NCBI GenBank assembly: GCA_024704765.1
Contig: JAKMXF010000343.1
Coordinates: 1-64,000, forward strand
Direction of reading: 5' to 3'
Origin: Oopsacas minuta
Lineage: Eukaryota; Animalia; Porifera
Length of the DNA stretch: 64,000 nt
How positions within the stretch are numbered: position 1 is the stretch's first letter; each line of letters opens with the position of its first letter. The notes beneath the pieces are model-generated. The model saw only the letters and a program-made list of their open reading frames with translations. It was not told the DNA's origin and did no database searches. Of the stretch, positions 4,133 through 43,230 are shown in pieces. A program made the position numbers and the translations under genes.

Positions 4133-5865
4133 ATGGCAACTGAGTGTGTGGAATATCTCGAACCCGAGAAAGGTAAATCTTTGTGTCGAGTCAGAAGGCA
4201 AATGGAAATTTGGGTGGTTATAGGACAGATATTTTGGTTGAAAATATTTCAAAGACAGAGACGGCTGCATTGGTTTGTAAACGTTGTCAAGGAATCTTAA
4301 GGAAGGCATACTTTTCGGCTACTAGCGGCGAGTATTTTTGTAAATGTTGTAAGAATTTGCTGGAACAAGCAGAGCCAAACGGACAAGTGAGGAAAATAGT
4401 CCACTCACTGAAAAGCTCGTGTCCTTTATACAAGAGAGGCTGTGAAGGAATAGGAAAGCTAGGAAAAGCTGAGAAGCATCTCAATATATGTGAGTATGTT
4501 TATGAGCAATGCAAACTAGGCTGTGAGATAGTGTTACCACGTCATGAGCTCCAAATACATATGAGAGAACATTGTGTAAAACGTGAAATTACCTGTGAGT
4601 ATTGTGATCAATATTTCAAAGTGTGTGATATGGGTTACCATATGAATCAGTGTGACAAAATGCAACGAACAAGGGAACTAGGATGCGACACAGTGATGTG
4701 TCACGAGATTATGGCCCAACACCTAGAAAATTCTTGTCGTGTGGAAGAGGAATGTAAACTAGGCTGCGGAAGAGTGTTACCACGTAATGAGCTAAAAATA
4801 CATATCAGTGAAGAATGTTATTATCGAAAAATACTGTGTGAGCATTGCCAGAGAGATTTCAAAGTTTGTGAAATGCGTAACCATTTGGAAGAATGTCCGG
4901 CAATGCTACTAAAGTGTGAACTGAAATGTGGCACAGTGGTCTGTCGTGAGGATATGGCACAACACCTAGAGAAATATTGTCGTCGTGGGATAGAGCATTG
5001 CAAACTAGGTTGTGGAATAGAGCTATCGCGTGATGAGCTGGAAATGCATGTGAATGATGAGTGTGTACAACGTATGATGCCATGTGAGTACTGTCACATA
5101 GATTTCAAAGCTTGTGACATGTCTAATCACAATAAAAAGTGCCAAAAAATGCCAATATCTTGTGAACTAGGATGTGACATACTGGTGTGTCGCGAGGACA
5201 AGGACCGACACATAGAGGAGGAGTGTGTAGAGAAGAAGGTAGAGTGTCCGTTTATAAAGTACAAGTGTGAAGTAGGACTAATCAAGAGGAAGGAACTCAA
5301 TCAACATTTGAAGGAGAAGAGGACTGAACACACAGAATTGAAACTCAGAGCTATGGAAGAGACTGTTATGAAACAGAGCGAAATGATTAGAAAACAGAGC
5401 GAAATGATTGCTAAACAGAACGAAATGAATGATAAACAGAGTGAAATGATTGCTAAACAGAGTGAAAGAATTTGTATACAGAACGAACAACTTAAAACGC
5501 TATTTTTCATCACAAATACCATCAAGCTAGAATGGAGAATTCCAAACGTGGTAAAATTTATAAGATATTGCACTCCCTCAACTTTTCAACAATTTCAAGT
5601 TGATAGGTTTAACTTTACTTTAGAGCTAATATATGACTCAATATATATTCATTACCCGCGCCAGGAACTATCTAAAGTCAAAGTACATTTTATATTTCGT
5701 ATTATTAATCATAACAACTCTGATGTCATTTGGGAATCCAAAGGTAATATAACAGAAATAAAGCAGACAGGTGGCGATATTAATGCTATCGCTAAAATCC
5801 CTGCAAGAGAAGAATTCATCAGAGATGATGGTATAGATCTTGAAATATTAGTAACTCTACTCTAA
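4133..5865 (+). pseudogene. TRAF-like gene copy 3 (RING-like, TRAF ZnFs, coiled coil, divergent MATH-like domain) with a -1 frameshift about 65 nt after the ATG
   Basis: ATG at 4133 (MATECVEYLEPEKGKSLCRVRR) matches the copy 4 start. agaaggcaaatgg vs agaagacaaaatgg in copy 4 shows a 1-bp loss in an A run, which puts the long ORF 4183-5865 out of frame with the ATG. Either a pseudogene or a sequencing error. Confidence 0.7.
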
Positions 5866-6416
5866 ACATAGTTATTATAATTACCTGTTATTAATACATA
5901 TGTATATTGCTGTTCATTACTTATCGTGATCCCTGAAAATTATATTACTATCAGATTTGAGGGCTAACCATGTACAGTCAAGCTAGCGGGGGCATTGTAC
6001 AGGTGGCCGCTATAAAGAGCTCGATTTCAATCCAAAATTCTTCCACGGGACTATACAAATTTTATTGTTGTATGATATAATTACATATTTCCTCAACTAT
6101 GAGCGAAGAAATCTCGTTCAAATTCTGTCCAAGTAAACTGATTTTACTTTCCAAATAGACTCTGGGTAACAGGCCGTTTAACCTTATTAATTTATCCACA
6201 GACTTAAGTGTCTGATTACAAACACAACATGATACTCACTTATCTCTAACTAATCATAAATTCATTGATAGATTAGATATGTGGAAATGGCGGATTTGTC
6301 TTTTGGAGATGATTCACAATTTTTATTATTATTATTATGCCAGTCATTACGATATCTCATTACAATCTTTATGTATTGAAATGATTTATAACCAACCAAT
6401 GAATGTATTATAAGAA

Positions 6417-33521: not shown

Positions 33522-36500
33522 ATGCATTTTTCAAAGAATTTCCTCTTCATTTTCATAAACATAATTCCTGTAATATTCTGTACCGAAGAATTCACGAATT
33601 TCTCTGAAAATCAAACACGGTTTATTGGAGATGAAGCTGCATTCCATTGCAAATTCAAAGTAACTGAGGATGATGGGAGTATTGGTATATTCGGAGCACA
33701 ATCTTGGGAGTATAAATTACTGAGAAGTGATACATTTATCTTACTTGACCATGAGGCGGACAACTTTACACTTATAGATATAAGCGGAGTTACAGGTCAC
33801 TCGATTATAATACTAAACACAGTGAGTTTTATTACTTATAACGCCAGTGTCGCGCCACAAAAGCCATGTTTACTGTGCCCACCAGAGGGGGGACTGCCGG
33901 ACTGGTAAGTACTATAGAACTGGGACTTATTGTGGTAATCTGTCCGTAATTTATTCGACAGGCCCTTCATGTTAAGTCCCCATTACAGTTTACCTTATGT
34001 ATGAGCAAGTGTCCTAAATCATACTAAAGCCCAACTGAACTCTCACCTGTTCACAATCTGGCAATGCTGATTCTGACACCTTTCAGTGGTTAATTGAATT
34101 CTAATATGGAACTATAGACACTTTAGAGAATTACATTTTGATTGAACTCATTCATTGTCTATTTTAAAGTTTCAATATACATATACTGGCTTTATGACAT
34201 CACTACATTCTTAATACCCTTATAGGTAACCAGGAATGAGCATGGTCTAGCTATCCGTTGTACTCTAGCGTCACTCTCACGGACAGTATTCCTATTCGTA
34301 TACTCTCCACCAGGACTGTCTCTATCTGATAATAGTTACCAGGTCAGTGAGGGACAGGAGGAGCCTCTAGTTGTCACCTTCCTTACAGAAGGATACCCTG
34401 ATCCTATTTATAGCGATAGATTTGATTGGTAAGTTATACAGAGGTATTTTGTAAATATTCATACCACAGTATATCAAACACTGATACATCGAACTCTGCT
34501 TATATCGACGTAATGATTGGGGTCCCTTGAGCTTTGATATAACTGGAATTGACTGTGTACAATAACACTGTTCCCTTTGGGTGTATAAATTTACACATCT
34601 GATCCACTTGGTCAAGTATTTGCCCATTTGTCTACACAGGTTCTACAATGATGAATTACTCGAGGAATCGTTATACATAGAATTGAAGTCCATCTCCTTC
34701 ACACTAACCTATCCATTACGGACACATACCGGTACCTATTCCCTGACAACGCATACGCCTGCTGGGAATGCTACTGCTGACTTCTACGTAGACGTTGTCT
34801 ATCAACCAGAAGTAGGGATTGGAATTTTATGTTTGACAGAAGAATATGCAGTAATAGGTGATAGGGTAACTTTATCATGTGGTGACGACATACAAGGCAA
34901 TCCAACTCCTACAACTATGTGGTACAAGGTGTGAAATTATACATATAAAATTACTCCACCCAATTATCCTACATCTCTTGCTAAGATACCCCGAAAATAT
35001 CCTTGCTATCTCGCACTTGTCCTTTAATTATTCAAATTTTACGTTTCATCTTTCGAATACTATTTTCCCTAGTTTCATTGCCAAACGGTTAGAAGCTCTT
35101 ATGATTTTGTCTGTTTACTATAACTTCCGAGAGTTTGTCATCTATCAGGTTACTAATCTATACTCAACAATATATTTTTAGAACAACTCCCTCGCATCTC
35201 TTTCAAACACAAACACACTAACTTTTGACAAAGTTACCGTCTCTGATACAGGCCTATATACTTGTAACATCAGTAATCCTCTGGGATATATTACAACTGA
35301 AACACAGCTGTATGTGTATGGTTCTGCTAGCCCTCCTGTATGGGATAAAGATGAAAACGTTGTTGGAGCTACTAATATACTGTTTGTGTGGGGAATTCCT
35401 TTGGAAACTTATGGTCTCGAGGTTGATTCTTTTGAATTGAGAGTTCAACACACTTCAGGTAAGTTTATACAGCCAGCTCTCGTTATATAGAAATGCCTAT
35501 AACGAAGTGTGAAATTGCAAATATGGTCCCAAACTGTCAAAGTAATATATAAGCCATCGGTTATATCTGAGTAATTATCACGGCCCCTTGAGCTTAGATA
35601 TCATAAGTTGACTATATTTTTCATAGTTTTGATCTTTTAATAGATTCAAGTTTATTATTTGAAGTGACTATTCCTGGTCAGAACTTATCTTTTTCAATAT
35701 CTTATAAGGATGGAATACTGGTGAGTTGAAGTACTGGTGAGCTGTATCAGTGGAACTAAAATTCAAAATTCCCTCCAGTTTTTTAATGTATATTGGTGAG
35801 GGGTCCACAGTAATTCGATGGAGGTGTTGTTCAGTGGTGGTCCGAGGATCTGGCAAACGAATCCGAGCCGCGGGATAAAACTCTTAACCTGGAGGGAAAT
35901 ACTGGTTTGCTTCCCCTAGGACGGCCCCTGGAATTGTCCTTATATGAACTCCAAGTTTAGGAATGTTTTCATTTAGGTATATCCTGATACTCTGTATACA
36001 GCTTATATTCGTTCATACACATATAACAATACTATACAAGGAAATACATCACTTCCATTAACCATAAGAACTCTCCCTTCTGCCCCAATACTTACATCTA
36101 TATATTCACAAATTATCACCTCCAACCTGTCAGCTGGTATATACCTAGATTGGCGCCTATACTCTTCTGGCTTAGCCAATGAAAGCGTAGACTATTATCA
36201 ATTAGAATTTCGTATGAATACCACAATAGAATTTGCAATACAATTACAGTCTCGTGATTTTCTTATTAGAAATTTCAGATCTCATTCGACGTACTTTGCA
36301 AGTGTTCTAGGTAACAGAGATGGGCTGGACGGTGAGCCGCTACACACGGAAATATACACAGGGGGCTACGGTGCACCCCCAACACCTCAATCAATCCTGA
36401 CTTCACAGATTTTGTTTGAGAATCATACAAATGTCATGTTGATGTTCAAAAGCGTTTTGACACCTTATATAGATTTTACTGTCCGAGTTTCATGTCGAAA

Positions 36501-37482: not shown

Positions 37483-37635
37483 TACAGTCAACTCCCATCA
37501 TATCAAACACGGATATATCAAAATATTAATTATACAAATATGGCCTCAAACCGTCAAAGTAACATATACTCCATCTGTTATATCAAAGTAATTATCATGG
37601 TCCCTTGAGCTTCGATATGACGGAAGTTGGCTGTA
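37483..37635. mobile_element. MITE family A copy
   Basis: tacagtcaactcccatcatatc...tcccttgagcttcgatatgacggaagttggctgta, with TA at both ends. Confidence 0.8.
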
Positions 37636-38420
37636 TTTACATATACATTCTTGTTACTAAATTTAGATATTATTTCTCATCAAAATGCAGAGACATCTCC
37701 TTGGTGGTAGAAACATGGTATTTGATTGGCTAACTCCGGGACGTATAAAAGGAATTATTTACTCATTCTACAAAGACTCAACCAAAATGAATTTTATACT
37801 ATTTTTAGGTACAGTTCTAATTATAGAAATAATCTACCCTCCTATACTCGAATCAGTAGCTACCAGTCCTACTACTAGTTAGTTATGTTAGAATGCTAAT
37901 TTCACACCTAAAAGTAGAAGCAAGAATTCTTTGTTACTTGTCACTTAATATTTTAGCTCAATATTATAATTATTATCAATGATGTATTAGAAATTACAGA
38001 TTGTTATTGATCGTTATCTTTAGTATAGTATCCAATACTGCCCTGTCCTCCAGGGTGTCTTGTTACCCGTGGTACACCATATAATTATAGTTATCCCTTA
38101 AGTGTGTATAATTTATGATACTTTGCTTTATAATATTTAATAATTCATAATATTATTATAATCGAATACGTTCAGTATAAATTTAGAATCTATAAATATC
38201 TGTGCTTGCTTATTGAACAACTGGAGGAGAGGCGTATTTGAGAGAGAGAGAGAATTGTACTTGCTTCTGTTTGTGAGTGGAGGGGGAGAAGGCTTGTGAC
38301 GTCGAATGGAGAGGTGTTAGGTGGTATAGAGACACTATATGCAGGGAGAAATCAGGTTATATAGTTCAGTTATATTTAAGAACGAAGATACGAGGTAAAT
38401 TGAATTGTAAATTAGATTAG

Positions 38421-38497
38421 GCGGTTGGTCCCTCAGGGGATGCAGCGATTTCGCTGTGAGTGCACTTGGGACACACTCCGTACCTTTCCCCAACCGC
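38421..38497 (-). ncRNA. Putative twister self-cleaving ribozyme (P1-type topology with a P5 stem)
   Basis: Minus strand GCGGTTGG-GGAA-AGGT-AC-G-GAGTGT-G-TCCCAAGT-GCACTC-A-CAGCG-AAAT-CGCTG-CATC-CCT-GA-GGGA-CCAACCGC. Manual fold gives P1 8 bp, P2 3 bp plus a mismatch, P4 6 bp, P5 5 bp, T1 TCCC/GGGA and T2 AC/GT. The conserved AA at the cleavage site, the catalytic GA and the L4 AA are all present. Confidence 0.7.
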
Positions 38498-38825
38498 GAG
38501 CCTATACGATTGGAGAGTGACAAGGGGAGCATGCATCCCATAATTGGGATGCACCTTCCTAGCTCTTGTACCTATACGTTGCCCTTGTCACCATTACAGT
38601 TACCTAGGCTCTCGCTTCGTTAATTGTATTTACATGGCTTACCCAACAGATCCACCCCCCACTTATAAACTGAAAGACCTATCGAACTTATCCACCTATA
38701 ACTGAAGGTGTTACTAGTTAGTATCCACCACCCAAGATCCATAATCCTCAAATAGTTGATCAGGCTAAGAGAGGGTACAGACCATGGATAATGAATACCA
38801 ACTAGTGTTACATGCGTTTCGTTTT

Positions 38826-39075
38826 AACGTATTCGTATTCGTATTCGATTCGATTCGATTCGATTCGTATTCGATTCGTATTTCGTATTCGATTCGTATT
38901 CGATTCGTATTCGATTCGTATTTCGTATTCGATTCGTATTTCGTATTCGATTCGTATTCGTATTCGATTCGTATTCGATTCGTATTTCGTATTCGATTCG
39001 TATTCGATTCGATTCGTATTCGATTCGTATTTCGTATTCGATTCGATTCGTATTCGTATTTCGTATTCGATTTCG
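38826..39075. repeat. Low-complexity tandem array built from ATTCG/GTATTCG subunits, followed by ~23-bp 'cgacacaactcgacac' repeats to ~39175
   Basis: Directly visible, e.g. gtattcgattcgtatttcgtattcgattc repeated about 250 bp. Confidence 0.9.
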
Positions 39076-39640
39076 TTTCCGCGACACAACTCGACACACC
39101 ACCGCGATACAACTCGACACACCACCGCTACACAACTCGACACAATACCGCGACCAACTCGACACAACACAACACGAATCATCTCCTGGGCATCAAATTC
39201 ACAGGCGCTAATGAATGGTTTATTGGCCGTTTCCATTTCAATGTATGCCAATGGTATCTCCGAAGTAGTAGGCTGCTTGTAGTTGAATGGCAAAGAAGAT
39301 ACGAAGTACTGCCTAGTTATTTATCTCTCCTATTTAAAGTTGACATATTCTAGAAATGTATCTCTCTATTTGACAAGAAATAAGTAATCATATATGGTGA
39401 ATGAACCCCATCATTAATTCACACCTTGTAGCCGTTAAGTTGTATTAATTTAAAGTCCACTGAGTGTCAAAAGTGGTTTGTTCACCAAATCATTGCTTAT
39501 TTGACAAATAAAACGATACATATCTAAAAAATTCCAACTTCCTGTACTATAATATGTGGCTATTATGGGATGCATTACACGTAAATGCTGCGTTACGTTG
39601 CTACGTGGTTATGTTGCGTTGCGTTGATGCGTAGTGTATG

Positions 39641-39674
<34 letters not shown>

Positions 39675-39696
39675 TACACAAGAAATATCAAATTAT

Positions 39697-39862
39697 TTAT
39701 ATTTAGCTCAGCTATACTATAGTACAGTTTTTGTGTATTAGCTTTTTTATGTTCGATGAAAGGTCATTTTTGGGATTAATGAAAGTCACATTTGGGACGA
39801 GTGTATGGGGTTTTTATTATTGCAAAAAAACTGTAGTATACTATAGCTAAGCTAGATATAAG
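39697..39862. mobile_element. MITE-like element with ~35-bp imperfect terminal inverted repeats
   Basis: Left end tatatttagctcagctatactatagtacagttttt pairs with right end aaaaaactgtagtatactatagctaagctagatata (about 4 mismatches). Confidence 0.55.
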
Positions 39863-40289
39863 GAATCTCAAAATATATACACCAATACACCTGTGGATGA
39901 CCTTTGCGCGATGCCCCCATCAATAAGTATGCCAAAGGAGTAACATCGTAACCAAGGAAGAGCAAACATCAATATCAAGACCAAAAGAGTAAATAACAAA
40001 CATCAATATCAAGACCAAAGAACACCAAAAAGAGAGATACAAACAGTAAACAGTTAATATTATTTAATTATAATAATGAGTTGACTAATAAAGCCAAAAT
40101 AAATTCAATAAATTTTACTGCAAATTTGTTATAATTAAATATTAATTTACAAACAATCCATATTGATAAATACCAAATGAATAACAGCGCTATTACACAT
40201 TTGGAATGTATTAATATGAGTATTGGATGGTAAATTAGTATTTAGTAAACAATAATGAAGTAAATATTTATGAATAATACCATATGACA

Positions 40290-40779
40290 AGGTGTTAGAA
40301 TTAATAATATTATTGTAGCGGGACAACAAGTAACACATAACAAGGTGTTACTATTAATAATATATGAATCGGGACAACAAGTAACACATAATAAGGTGTT
40401 ACTATTAATAATATATGAATCGGGACAACAAGTAACACATAAAAGGTGTTACTATTAATAATATATGAATCGGGACAACAAGTAACACATAAAAGGTGTT
40501 ACTATTAATAATATATGAATCGGGACAACAAGTAACACATAACAGGGTGTTACTATTAATAATATATGAATCGGGACAACAAGTAACACATAAAAGGTGT
40601 TACTATTAATAATATATGAATCGGGACAACAAGTAACACATAACAGGGTGTTACTATTAATAATATATGAATCGGGACAATAAGTAACACATAACAAGGT
40701 GTTACTATTAATAATATATGAATCGGGACAATAAGTAACACATAACAAGGTGTTACTATTAATAATATATGAATCGGGA
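40290..40779. repeat. Minisatellite, about 9-10 units of 50-51 bp
   Basis: Unit aacaaggtgttactattaataatatatgaatcgggacaacaagtaacacat, with anchors at 40321, 40372, 40423, 40473 and onward. Confidence 0.92.
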
Positions 40780-41421
40780 TTTGATAATCAAATATAATTT
40801 TGGCGAAATTTCAAAAAGATGATAGTTACTTTAAAATTGTGTAAATAAAATCCGTAAATAAAATACATTTACAAGTTACGTAACAAACTGATTATCCTGA
40901 TTCCAATTTGAAGCCATGTCAGACATCAATAACAAACAAACAATCACGTTGACATCAATAAAAGACCAACTCAGTCTTGTAGAGGAGAATCGCGAGTAGT
41001 AGAATCTTCGTAACCGGTACCAAATAATAGATGAAAAATCCGTTCCTATTTATACTAATTTCTCAGATGCCTGCAAAACACCTGCAAACAATTTCCTGAC
41101 CACCTGCACCTAGTGCAACACCTGCAATAATTTTCTATGTAAAATATAATACTTTAAGACAGGTTACAGCACCTGCACTATATATGTTACTATAGTAGCG
41201 GTATAGTATTTGTATTGAATTAATACTGTAATGCAATTTCTATTGAATATTTGGGCTTATTTTGCTGTTAATTAATTTGAATATTACCGAATATTTACTA
41301 TTTATTTGAAGCTAACAATAGAGGGTAGACTCTGCTTAATAGGGCTCTCGATAAATAGTGTTAATACTTCACTTAACCTGGCCCCGAAGTGACCCTATTG
41401 AGCGGAGTCTACTGTACTTAG

Positions 41422-43230
41422 ATGTTATCTAGCCTTTCCTCTTTCATCTCAACAACAACAACAACAACAACAAGATTTTTTACAATCAAACACGTCAACA
41501 GACCAGCTATGAAATGGATATTAATTCTAGGCATTGGGAGTGTGAGTATTTTAATTGGGATAAGTTGCTACCTACGCTTTAGGAGGAAGACTAAACCGAA
41601 AGCCTTGCAAGCTACACAATTAATGCAATCTGGAGTTTGGAAGTCTTTTCACTCAGGGGCAGCTTCATCACCGGTTACACATGTAACAGTTGCAACCAAT
41701 CATACAAGTGATCAGCTGTTCAATAATGGAGTGATTGCATTCCAGCAGGCTATTGCTTCCTGGAGAACTTGTTGTGAAGTGTTAGATAATCAGGAAGTAG
41801 AGATAGGTGAGTTGACAACAAGAAAACAAGCTAACAAACAAACAAACAATTAACTAAGATATCTATACCACTAGATCCTACTCCAGAAGATAGTGATTTC
41901 TCAGACAGTATAGCAACAATTAACTCAATTCCTATCGTCCCTAAGAGTAACATCAATCAGCGTGGAGTTAGAGCTCTACTAACACAAGCTGAATATCTAT
42001 CACAGTTTGTTGATCGTATAGTCATGAGGTCTAGGAGTAGCATACAAACTAATGGGAGTATTGGGGAAGTCTTGAGGGTAGAGAGTTGTAATTCTGATCA
42101 CGTTGATTATGACTATAAGGTTTGTTTGTTTGTTTGTTTGTACAGTGTATGCCGGTTATATGAACACCCTTGGGAGTAGCAATACATGCTCTTATAACCT
42201 GCATCCACTGTGTATATGCTTGCTTGTTTACTTGTTTACTACTTATTTGTTTATTTTCTTCATAATTACATTCTAGGGTTTACCAAACTCTCCTCTAACT
42301 TCACATCCCTATTTTTCAGATGACATCAACAACAACAAACGAATAGAATATATCTCAGATACAGATTCCTACGAGTCTGCCACACTACAATCAGACACAA
42401 ACAGTATTTGTTTATCTTCAAACATAAACACAGATAAACAAACAATTCCTAGAATAATACTAACAACAAATGTCTTATACAACGAGGCGATCTCGCTGGC
42501 AAGAAGTAATAGAATTTTTGTAAGACACATGCGTAGTGAAATGCTGCACTGTGAGAATGATATTGATTTTATAGCCAAATTGCATTGTATCCGAACAGCC
42601 TTCGATTATTTGATCGAATCAGAGGAAAATTGTTTATTTTTTGAGAACATAACTATAGAAATGATGACGCGTTTTCTTCTGAGCGCCAATAAGGATGCAA
42701 ATGCGTTTTGTGATGAATTCAAGAAAATGGTAAATTTCGTGAAGAATCCTCAAAATGTTCAAACAATCAAGAAAGAACTCAATTCACGGAATCTCAAAGT
42801 AGTCGGTTTTTGGGATGTCGCAATAGACTTTGCGCTTTTAGATGCGTTCACTGATTTAGAAAATCTTCCAGCGCCTGTAACCATGGTAACACAAAACAGA
42901 TGGTTAACACCTGGGCTTAGAGAATCGGCCATGACAAATGCTGTCTGGGCCATTATGCAGGGGAAAATGAAAATGTTGGAAAACCCCAACGGCTTTATGT
43001 TACGCTTTTATAAACTCGGCGAGACATTTATGTTCACTCTTGCTTGGGGGTTTTTGGGTACGGACGAAGTGCTCAAGGAGACTTGTTTTGTTTTGAAGAA
43101 TGGTATTTTAACATTTCTGAGGGACATCTTTGATGTCAGGGTTGCTAACTATTCAAATATCGAAACTCTATCAGATGATATTCTAGCGATTGGTCGTGAC
43201 AGACTGAATTTACTCAAATCACACTTATAA
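41422..43230 (+). CDS. MIGA: Mitoguardin (MIGA/FAM73), multi-exon
   Basis: N-terminal TM (WILILGIGSVSILIGISCYL) and C-terminal lipid-transfer domain DFIAKLHCIRTAF...DFALLDAFTDLENLP...NRWL...AWGFLG...DDIL. Confidence 0.88.

Follow-up and report, generated by a model that had tools for sequence, protein, structure and literature searches.

Twister ribozymes are known in bacteria, viruses and more than 1000 eukaryote species. One described form of the class is type P1 with an optional P5 helix (Roth et al. 2014; Rfam RF03160, clan CL00120). The role demonstrated for animal twisters is the 5′ processing of Perere-3 RTE elements, in which a target-site duplication forms P1 (PMC8501958; see also PMC7761336), and in Schistosoma mansoni the T-variant twisters lie at the 5′ end of these RTE-type, non-long-terminal-repeat retrotransposons (Liu et al. 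2021, PMC8501958). Here a twister-like motif of 77 nt is described from the sponge Oopsacas minuta, on the minus strand at positions 38421–38497 of a 64,000-nt stretch of contig JAKMXF010000343.1 (assembly GCA_024704765.1), referred to below as the window. A literature search found no report of a sponge twister, and the O. minuta genome paper (PMC10280926) makes no mention of ribozymes. The motif is likely to be a genuine, divergent self-cleaving twister of type P1, with the optional P5 and without P3, and is probably a new member of the known class in the Porifera, where that search found none. This interpretation is supported by comparative evidence and by published tolerance rules, not by covariance-model scores.

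The 77-nt string quoted in a preliminary description of the locus, together with every pairing listed there, was confirmed. All features of the motif are on the minus strand, and with the RNA numbered 1–77 the window coordinate of nucleotide i is 38497-(i-1). P1 consists of GCGGUUGG (38490–38497, RNA 1–8) and CCAACCGC (38421–38428, RNA 70–77), which form eight Watson-Crick pairs. The 5′ strand of L1 is G9-G10-A11-A12 (38486–38489). In P2, AGG and U16 (38482–38485) face C60 and CCU (38435–38438), such that A13-U63, G14-C62 and G15-C61 are paired and U16 and C60 are mismatched. The 5′ strand of T2 (pseudoknot PK1), AC (38480–38481), pairs with L4 as A17-U34 and C18-G33. P4 is formed by GAGUGU (38473–38478, RNA 20–25) and GCACUC (38458–38463, RNA 35–40), with five Watson-Crick pairs and a closing U.G. 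The enclosed loop L4, GUCCCAAGU (38464–38472, RNA 26–34), contains UCCC, the 5′ strand of T1, followed by AA and by GU, the 3′ strand of T2. P4 is followed by the P5 hairpin CAGCG-AAAU-CGCUG (38443–38456, RNA 42–46 with 51–55, loop AAAU). G64-A65 (38433–38434), a putative general-base G and an A predicted to pair with an L4 adenine, lies directly 3′ of P2 as in the canonical GAGGG, and is followed by the 3′ strand of T1 (PK2), GGGA (38429–38432), in which A69, G68, G67 and G66 face U27, C28, C29 and C30.

The spacing on the 5′ side (AA-4nt-NC) and on the 3′ side (4nt-GA-GGG) is that of canonical twisters, and the scissile bond is therefore predicted between G10 (38488, position -1) and A11 (38487, position +1, the predicted general acid). 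This placement, based on the spacing to P2 and T2, agrees with the earlier assignment. An extra G in L4 had been listed earlier as a deviation from the class; it is none: the L4 listed for S. mansoni twisters is GUCCCAAGC (PMC8501958), to which the sponge loop GUCCCAAGU is identical at 8 of 9 positions. Three deviations are to be added to those already noted, namely G9, which stands unpaired ahead of the -1 base on the 3′ side of the first P1 strand, an L2 lacking “UAAA” and a possible fourth pair in T1.

Acceptance by inspection in the CHiTA study (PMC11662667) looks for “NC” in the PK1 5′ strand, a complementary PK2 3′ strand, an “NA” cleavage site, and a general-acid A with a general-base G. 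All four are present in the sponge motif. The core helices P1, P2 and P4 occur in twister order, and the elements follow one another with the proper order and spacing: N-A-A; P2; NC with its Watson-Crick complement in L4; C-C-C-A-A-G; and G-A followed by GGG complementary to L4. The N-A-A of the L1 5′ strand is supplied by G10-A11-A12 at the canonical distance from T2, the L1 3′ strand reads CCU-GA-GGGA and contains the GAGGG found also in viral and S. mansoni twisters, and the conserved C-C-C-A-A-G of L4 is contained in GUCCCAAGU. T2, in which AC is complementary to GU, obeys the “NC” rule and differs from the canonical GC/GC by a double change; T1 would pair UCCC with the complementary GGGA.

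In the CHiTA assays (PMC11662667) any of the four bases could stand at -1, and both L1 insertions and imperfect P1, P2 and P4 helices were tolerated; the length of L2 was unconstrained, and every P5-bearing twister was more than 0.8 cleaved. Mutation was harmful at A1, A2, the general base and L4 A6, and so were mismatches other than wobbles in the two pseudoknots, PK1 and PK2 (PMC11662667). Each of these positions is intact in the sponge motif. Read against these rules, a -1 base that is G, a T2 with an A-U pair and a mismatched P2 each fall inside the range found to be tolerated.

The motif belongs to a dispersed family. The O. minuta genome (61,460,524 bases in 365 contigs) was searched by BLAST followed by two rounds of a family covariance model, which gave 22 copies, decayed ones included. 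The core string is intact in ten of them, L030 has a mutated L1 and about 11 are decayed, and an exact-core pattern run genome-wide found ten copies against none with a reversed control. Lineage A comprises six identical copies, that of the window among them, and one variant (L024). Lineage B has one intact copy (L025), one with a 1-nt deletion in P4 (L027) and one in which L4 is destroyed (L026), while lineage C has an intact copy (L029) and a copy with a mutated L1 (L030, A2 to C). About ten further copies are decayed.

The repeats of lineages A and B have the motif alone in common (72 nt at 83% identity, 40 nt of them identical). Flank homology ends at most 7 nt from the motif, or inside it, between L025 and L026, between L029 and L030, and between L034/L035 and L036 (at -1 for L036). 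Copies occupy at least seven unrelated flanking contexts, and the unit common to these contexts, judged by where their similarity stops, is the module of about 80 nt itself and no larger element.

Three observations bear on the extent of the family. A string of the form ATTTACAAT / AATTACAAT recurs downstream of P1, at a distance of 9–28 nt, in families A (window about 38400–38410), B (L025) and C (L029), whose flanks are otherwise unrelated; this could be chance in AT-rich DNA. At G000:C30:13858-13931 (minus strand) the stretch GGGGTGTCTCCCAAGCACTCTGG resembles the sponge P4-L4, and this locus may be another decayed member. Four sequencing runs were available from one sample and study, none of them recorded as RNA, and their Logan contigs break inside the repeat. 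At window position 38453 the read contigs of two runs (X2, X4) branch at a common 40-nt core into P5 variants outside the assembly, for example with a longer P5 loop, and the sample may contain copies or alleles in addition to those assembled.

The intact lineages A, B and C are identical at 28 of 28 core positions: the L1 5′ strand (4/4), P2 (6/6), U16 (1/1), the T2 5′ strand (2/2), L4 (9/9), G-A (2/2) and the T1 3′ strand (4/4). The corresponding figures are 2/16 for P1, 3/10 for the P5 stem, 0/12 for the P5 loop and 2/6 for L2. An invariant L1, L4 and pseudoknot core combined with helices that are free to vary is the signature of the twister class.

Covariation was scored over 17 copies. 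Two-sided, compensatory changes were found in seven of the eight pairs of P1, in all five pairs of P5 (whose loop is free in length and sequence), in two pairs of P4 (for example A-U to G-C in lineage C) and, as weak covariation, in two pairs of P2. Paired cells made up 82.8% of the total, against at most 41% with slid partners, and the observed covariation score was reached by none of 500 shuffles, in an alignment that was fitted to the proposed structure and so favours it. The strands of P1 are unambiguously anchored beside the invariant GGAA and GGGA and can be read directly as GCGGUUGG/CCAACCGC, GUGGUGG/CUACCAC, AAUUCG/CGAAUU and UUUUCGG/CCGAAAA. An unbiased MAFFT alignment folded with RNAalifold, with no structure supplied, recovered P1 with five compensated pairs. 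The pyrimidine-pyrimidine character of the P2 mismatch (U.C or U.U) is kept in all intact copies. Covarying paralogous copies elsewhere in the genome had been named beforehand as a check on the prediction, and they are present in at least three lineages. These results show that compensatory evolution has maintained the helices of the fold, and that three lineages with otherwise no sequence in common have an invariant twister core.

One part of the preliminary description needs to be restated. It had spoken of a covarying T2 and had taken the AC/GU pairing as an argument for selection on structure. The complementarity and the double change relative to GC/GC hold, whereas T2 never covaries within the sponge family, being constant among its intact copies, and the argument is weak in that the first T2 position, variable among known twisters, is N in the acceptance rules of the CHiTA study (PMC11662667).

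Wobble pairs are frequent in the alignment (GU 7 at columns 7/88, UG 11 at columns 26/36), and the structure is thus to be read on the minus strand and as one of RNA rather than DNA. This bears directly on the view that the motif is a DNA-level feature, such as the palindromic structure of a recombination site or transposon end, lacking any function as RNA. Such a feature would suit a location in non-coding dispersed repeats, in a genome whose repeats are reported as mostly unclassified together with DNA transposons (PMC10280926). G.U and U.G pairs, however, are A.C mismatches on the opposite strand, so that the pairing is specific to one strand, as in RNA; the motif lies inside the repeats and not at their ends; and its surroundings showed no terminal inverted repeats. 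A purely DNA-level role is therefore extremely improbable.

Conservation within lineage A is of another kind. Its six copies are identical over about 140–200 nt, with a block free of differences from about -120 to +80 around the motif, and this identity was discarded as a footprint of selection as the block extends beyond the ribozyme. The block includes a perfect 9-bp hairpin, TGCATCCCA-ATTA-TGGGATGCA (38532–38553, minus strand), 34 nt upstream of P1 and invariant in these six near-identical copies. A string near its loop, UCCCAAUU, resembles L4. A P0 with a linker has been described for twisters (PMC11662667), and the hairpin is possibly its equivalent, its membership in the ribozyme being uncertain.

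A number of results weigh against the twister assignment, beginning with the covariance-model searches. A search of the whole window at Rfam gathering scores brought no family to threshold, and an Rfam search of 321-nt and 81-nt stretches gave no twister family at E<=10. The twister models RF03160, RF02684 and RF03154 run genome-wide gave zero matches. A significant twister covariance-model score had been set beforehand as a check, and it failed with all Rfam twister models and with a custom model of canonical twisters. The sole Rfam matches at E<=10 were to two microRNA families (13.5–14.6 bits, E 6–9). In the same searches at E<=10 there was no Rfam match to twister-sister, pistol, hatchet or HDV-like (hepatitis delta virus-like) ribozymes, nor to the hammerhead, whose core CUGANGA is also failed by the CUGAGGG of the motif. 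Transfer RNA (tRNA) and a tRNA-derived short interspersed element were rejected in the same way, ARAGORN finding nothing in 37500–41500 and Rfam giving no tRNA match.

For calibration, viral contigs were scanned exactly for the rice P4-L4 16-mer of the CHiTA study, CCGGTCCCAAGCCCGG, which retrieved many textbook twisters. The consensus of RF03160, the Rfam type-P1 model, includes P3, and twelve textbook P3-less twisters from IMG/VR contigs (L060, L062, L072, L102, L109, L115, L129, L131, L135, L146, L136 and L049) all scored under its gathering threshold of 67.2 bits. A canonical P5-bearing, P3-less control nevertheless reached 29 bits (E = 5e-5, 80-nt search), and the shortfall of the sponge motif is therefore not due to the missing P3 or to architecture alone; the motif also strays from the Rfam model in the sequences of P4, T2, L1 and L2. 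Model R3, built from the twelve canonical P3-less viral twisters, gave 0.8 bits (E = 1.2, 89-nt search), and the motif was not among the top matches of the window. R3 is a biased and over-specific test, since its training sequences were all retrieved with the single P4-L4 string CCGGTCCCAAGCCCGG and P4 is frozen in it. In the reverse direction, the family model R2 gave no match in 18 viral contigs holding canonical twisters. The sponge P4-L4 15-mer matched at least 120 metagenome contigs, and among the matches listed none passes the twister descriptor; these matches look like chance, with no relatives among them. One control contig, L109, carries a type-P1 twister (2812–2874) and a twister-sister (5163–5234) 2.3 kb apart.

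The second group of adverse points concerns the motif itself. P2 has just three pairs beside the conserved mismatch, T2 is weakened by its one A-U pair, and the “UAAA” of the L2 3′ strand, conserved in the Rfam consensus, is absent. Together these could prevent a useful rate of cleavage, in which case the module would be derived from a twister and now catalytically dead or very slow, its copies being fossils spread by repeat duplication. The canonical models, which leave the motif unscored beside a 29-bit control, are in keeping with this, as is the visible decay of more than half of the family (L026 has a destroyed L4, L028 and L030 carry mutations of A2 or of the general-base G, and others are affected). 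PK1 is the helix that suffers most from weakening in the CHiTA data (PMC11662667), and recent duplication, rather than selection, may explain why the identity of the six A copies runs past the motif. Identity at 28 of 28 core positions amid diverged stems and flanks is nevertheless hard to account for without ongoing or recent purifying selection on the catalytic parts, and the CHiTA study, in which P2 mismatches and any -1 base were tolerated, does not list a Watson-Crick A-U pair in PK1 as a harmful imperfection (PMC11662667). A dead or very slow module is accordingly considered unlikely.

The third group concerns the fold. The minimum free energy (MFE) of the motif is -31.6 kcal/mol (z = -2.7 against shuffles). 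In the MFE fold a competing CCCC/GGGG hairpin replaces P2 and T1, and RNAalifold likewise favours a CCC...GGG hairpin; the nested twister structure evaluates at -28.6 kcal/mol. T1, T2 and P2 show no real covariation in the family, T1 and T2 being constant among the intact copies and disrupted among the decayed, and because T1 and T2 do not covary the tertiary fold rests on resemblance to the class. Chance resemblance was gauged with a descriptor. A strict form demanding four perfect P2 pairs missed the motif, while a relaxed CHiTA-style form (at least three of four P2 pairs) found it. With P1 of at least 4 bp the relaxed form yields about one match per 120 Mb of random sequence with matched dinucleotide content, about 0.001 being expected per window, and a lone match in a 61-Mb genome, roughly the chance level for one genome, is unremarkable.

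These findings would be expected if the motif were a structured RNA or repeat element with no relation to twisters, such as a three- or four-way junction in which the CCC/GGG hairpin takes the place of P2 and T1 and the likeness of the core is accidental; the negative covariance-model searches and the pseudoknots that do not covary point the same way. Against this stands the family. Nine copies in three lineages satisfy the descriptor, and because of these and the ten exact-core copies the above-chance status of the motif rests on the family and not on a single match. The helices that covary are exactly those predicted by the twister descriptor, the invariant “single-stranded” segments are complementary in twister fashion (UCCC/GGGA, AC/GU, AGG/CCU), and the class-specific strings UCCCAAG, GAGGG and AA stand at the right spacing. 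The failure of ARAGORN to find a tRNA, and the two low-scoring microRNA families as best Rfam matches, offer no substitute identity. An unrelated RNA is thus quite improbable, clearly more so than a dead module. Outside the family there is no excess of twister-like matches, a loose genome-wide pattern giving 155 matches against 136 with a reversed control, and no canonical twisters are evident in the O. minuta genome.

If the motif is a twister, a transcript reading through the repeat would fold P1, P2, P4 and P5, after which L4 (GUCCCAAGU) would dock via two pseudoknots, T1 (UCCC with GGGA) and T2 (GU with AC). Docking would position G64 as the general base and A11 as the general acid at the G10-A11 bond, and the RNA would be cut between 38488 and 38487 to leave an upstream product with a 2′,3′-cyclic phosphate and a downstream product with a 5′-OH. 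Both the catalysis and the exact cut site we infer from the twister class.

The surroundings of the motif are those of a gene-free repeat island, as proposed in the preliminary description: a stretch of about 5 kb has no recognisable genes and contains tandem and simple repeats. The window copy of the family-A repeat extends over 38018–40846. Family A is a low-copy (seven copies), non-coding repeat of 1–3 kb, both flanks of which occur in 6–8 copies, and it carries the motif internally. The neighbouring open reading frames (ORFs) are either genes of ordinary kinds, coding for Mitoguardin, eIF3g and a protein with NHL repeats, or free of recognised domains. The suggested link to a retroelement finds no support, since no ORF or Pfam domain of a reverse transcriptase (RT), endonuclease or transposase was found near the window copy or the family-B copy. 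A twister at the 5′ end of a retrotransposon was rejected on the grounds that flank homology continues upstream of the motif and that no endonuclease/RT ORF lies downstream; a retrozyme or circular RNA was also rejected, there being a single motif per locus and no unit-length circle predicted.

Other repeats lie in the same region. A microsatellite of the (ATTCG/TATTCG)n type (38828–39096) is followed by three 23-nt repeats (39079–39153), and these create spurious ORFs on both strands between 38765 and 39353. About 11 tandem copies of a 50/51-nt unit are present at 40291–40846, and the same array is found at another family-A locus (G000:C111; L012, about 4535–6020). A 57-nt repeat (TTATATC...GGTCCCTTGAGCTT...GATAT) occurs at 34500–34556, 35561–35617 and 37578–37634, and also near the twister-like loci L011, L014, L016 and L017; it is possibly an element resembling a miniature inverted-repeat transposable element.

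The role of the ribozyme, if active, would most likely be the processing of non-coding repeat transcripts, and not, it appears, 5′-end processing of an RT-encoding retrotransposon as in Schistosoma. Its presence in several unrelated non-coding contexts without a retrotransposon gene is a misfit with the sole function shown for animal twisters and provides a new system in which to study what twisters in genomes do. Should the RNA cleave, a hexactinellid twister would extend the class to the Porifera, and if genuine it would be a naturally occurring variant in which T2 and P2 are weakened. The Rfam type-P1 gathering threshold misses both the sponge family and the twelve P3-less viral twisters, so that surveys relying on RF03160 under-report twisters. 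A bolder and rather doubtful proposal is that the family represents a distinct sub-type, marked by a T2 that includes an A-U pair, a P2 closed by a conserved pyrimidine-pyrimidine mismatch, a minimal L2 and a P5 that is obligatory, and that this sub-type is invisible to current covariance models and persists in many unrelated contexts as a self-contained unit of about 80 nt. In that case either the ribozyme itself moves or is selected, or the host has recruited the module as a general RNA-processing signal, and twisters would be substantially under-counted in early-branching animals.

Compared with known systems, the motif resembles the hammerhead retrozymes, Penelope-like elements and small circular-RNA repeats of metazoans (de la Pena and co-workers, PMC7761336) in being a small motif in non-coding dispersed repeats. 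The hammerhead retrozymes differ in ribozyme class and in having two motifs in direct or tandem repeats, whereas the sponge loci have one each. The S. mansoni T-variant is also a twister core within repeated animal DNA, with an L4 of the form GUCCCAAG-N with a leading G and with variable bases around the cleavage site. In contrast to the T-variant, the sponge copies have no endonuclease/RT ORF downstream or within several kb, are alike both upstream and downstream of the predicted cleavage site, have an intact and covarying P1 that is not supplied by a target-site duplication, and carry P5 in place of P3. The last comparison is with twister type P1 with optional P5, represented by a viral-contig twister (L136:10242-10310) and those of rice and S. 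mansoni. The sponge motif, which is undetected by RF03160, RF03154 and RF02684, departs from these in its T2 (A-U/C-G against G-C/C-G), in a -1 base that is G and is preceded by an extra unpaired G, in a P2 of three pairs plus a conserved U.C or U.U mismatch, in a T1 that can be extended to four pairs (U27-A69), in an L2 of 1 nt on the 5′ side and without UAAA on the 3′ side, and in a P4 unrelated to the common CCGG/CCGG. The class consensus strings UCCCAAG (in L4), GAGGG and AA are identical, and the order of parts is the same throughout: P1, L1 (N-A-A), P2, the T2 5′ strand (NC), P4, L4, P4′, P5, P2′, G-A, the T1 3′ strand (GGG) and P1′.

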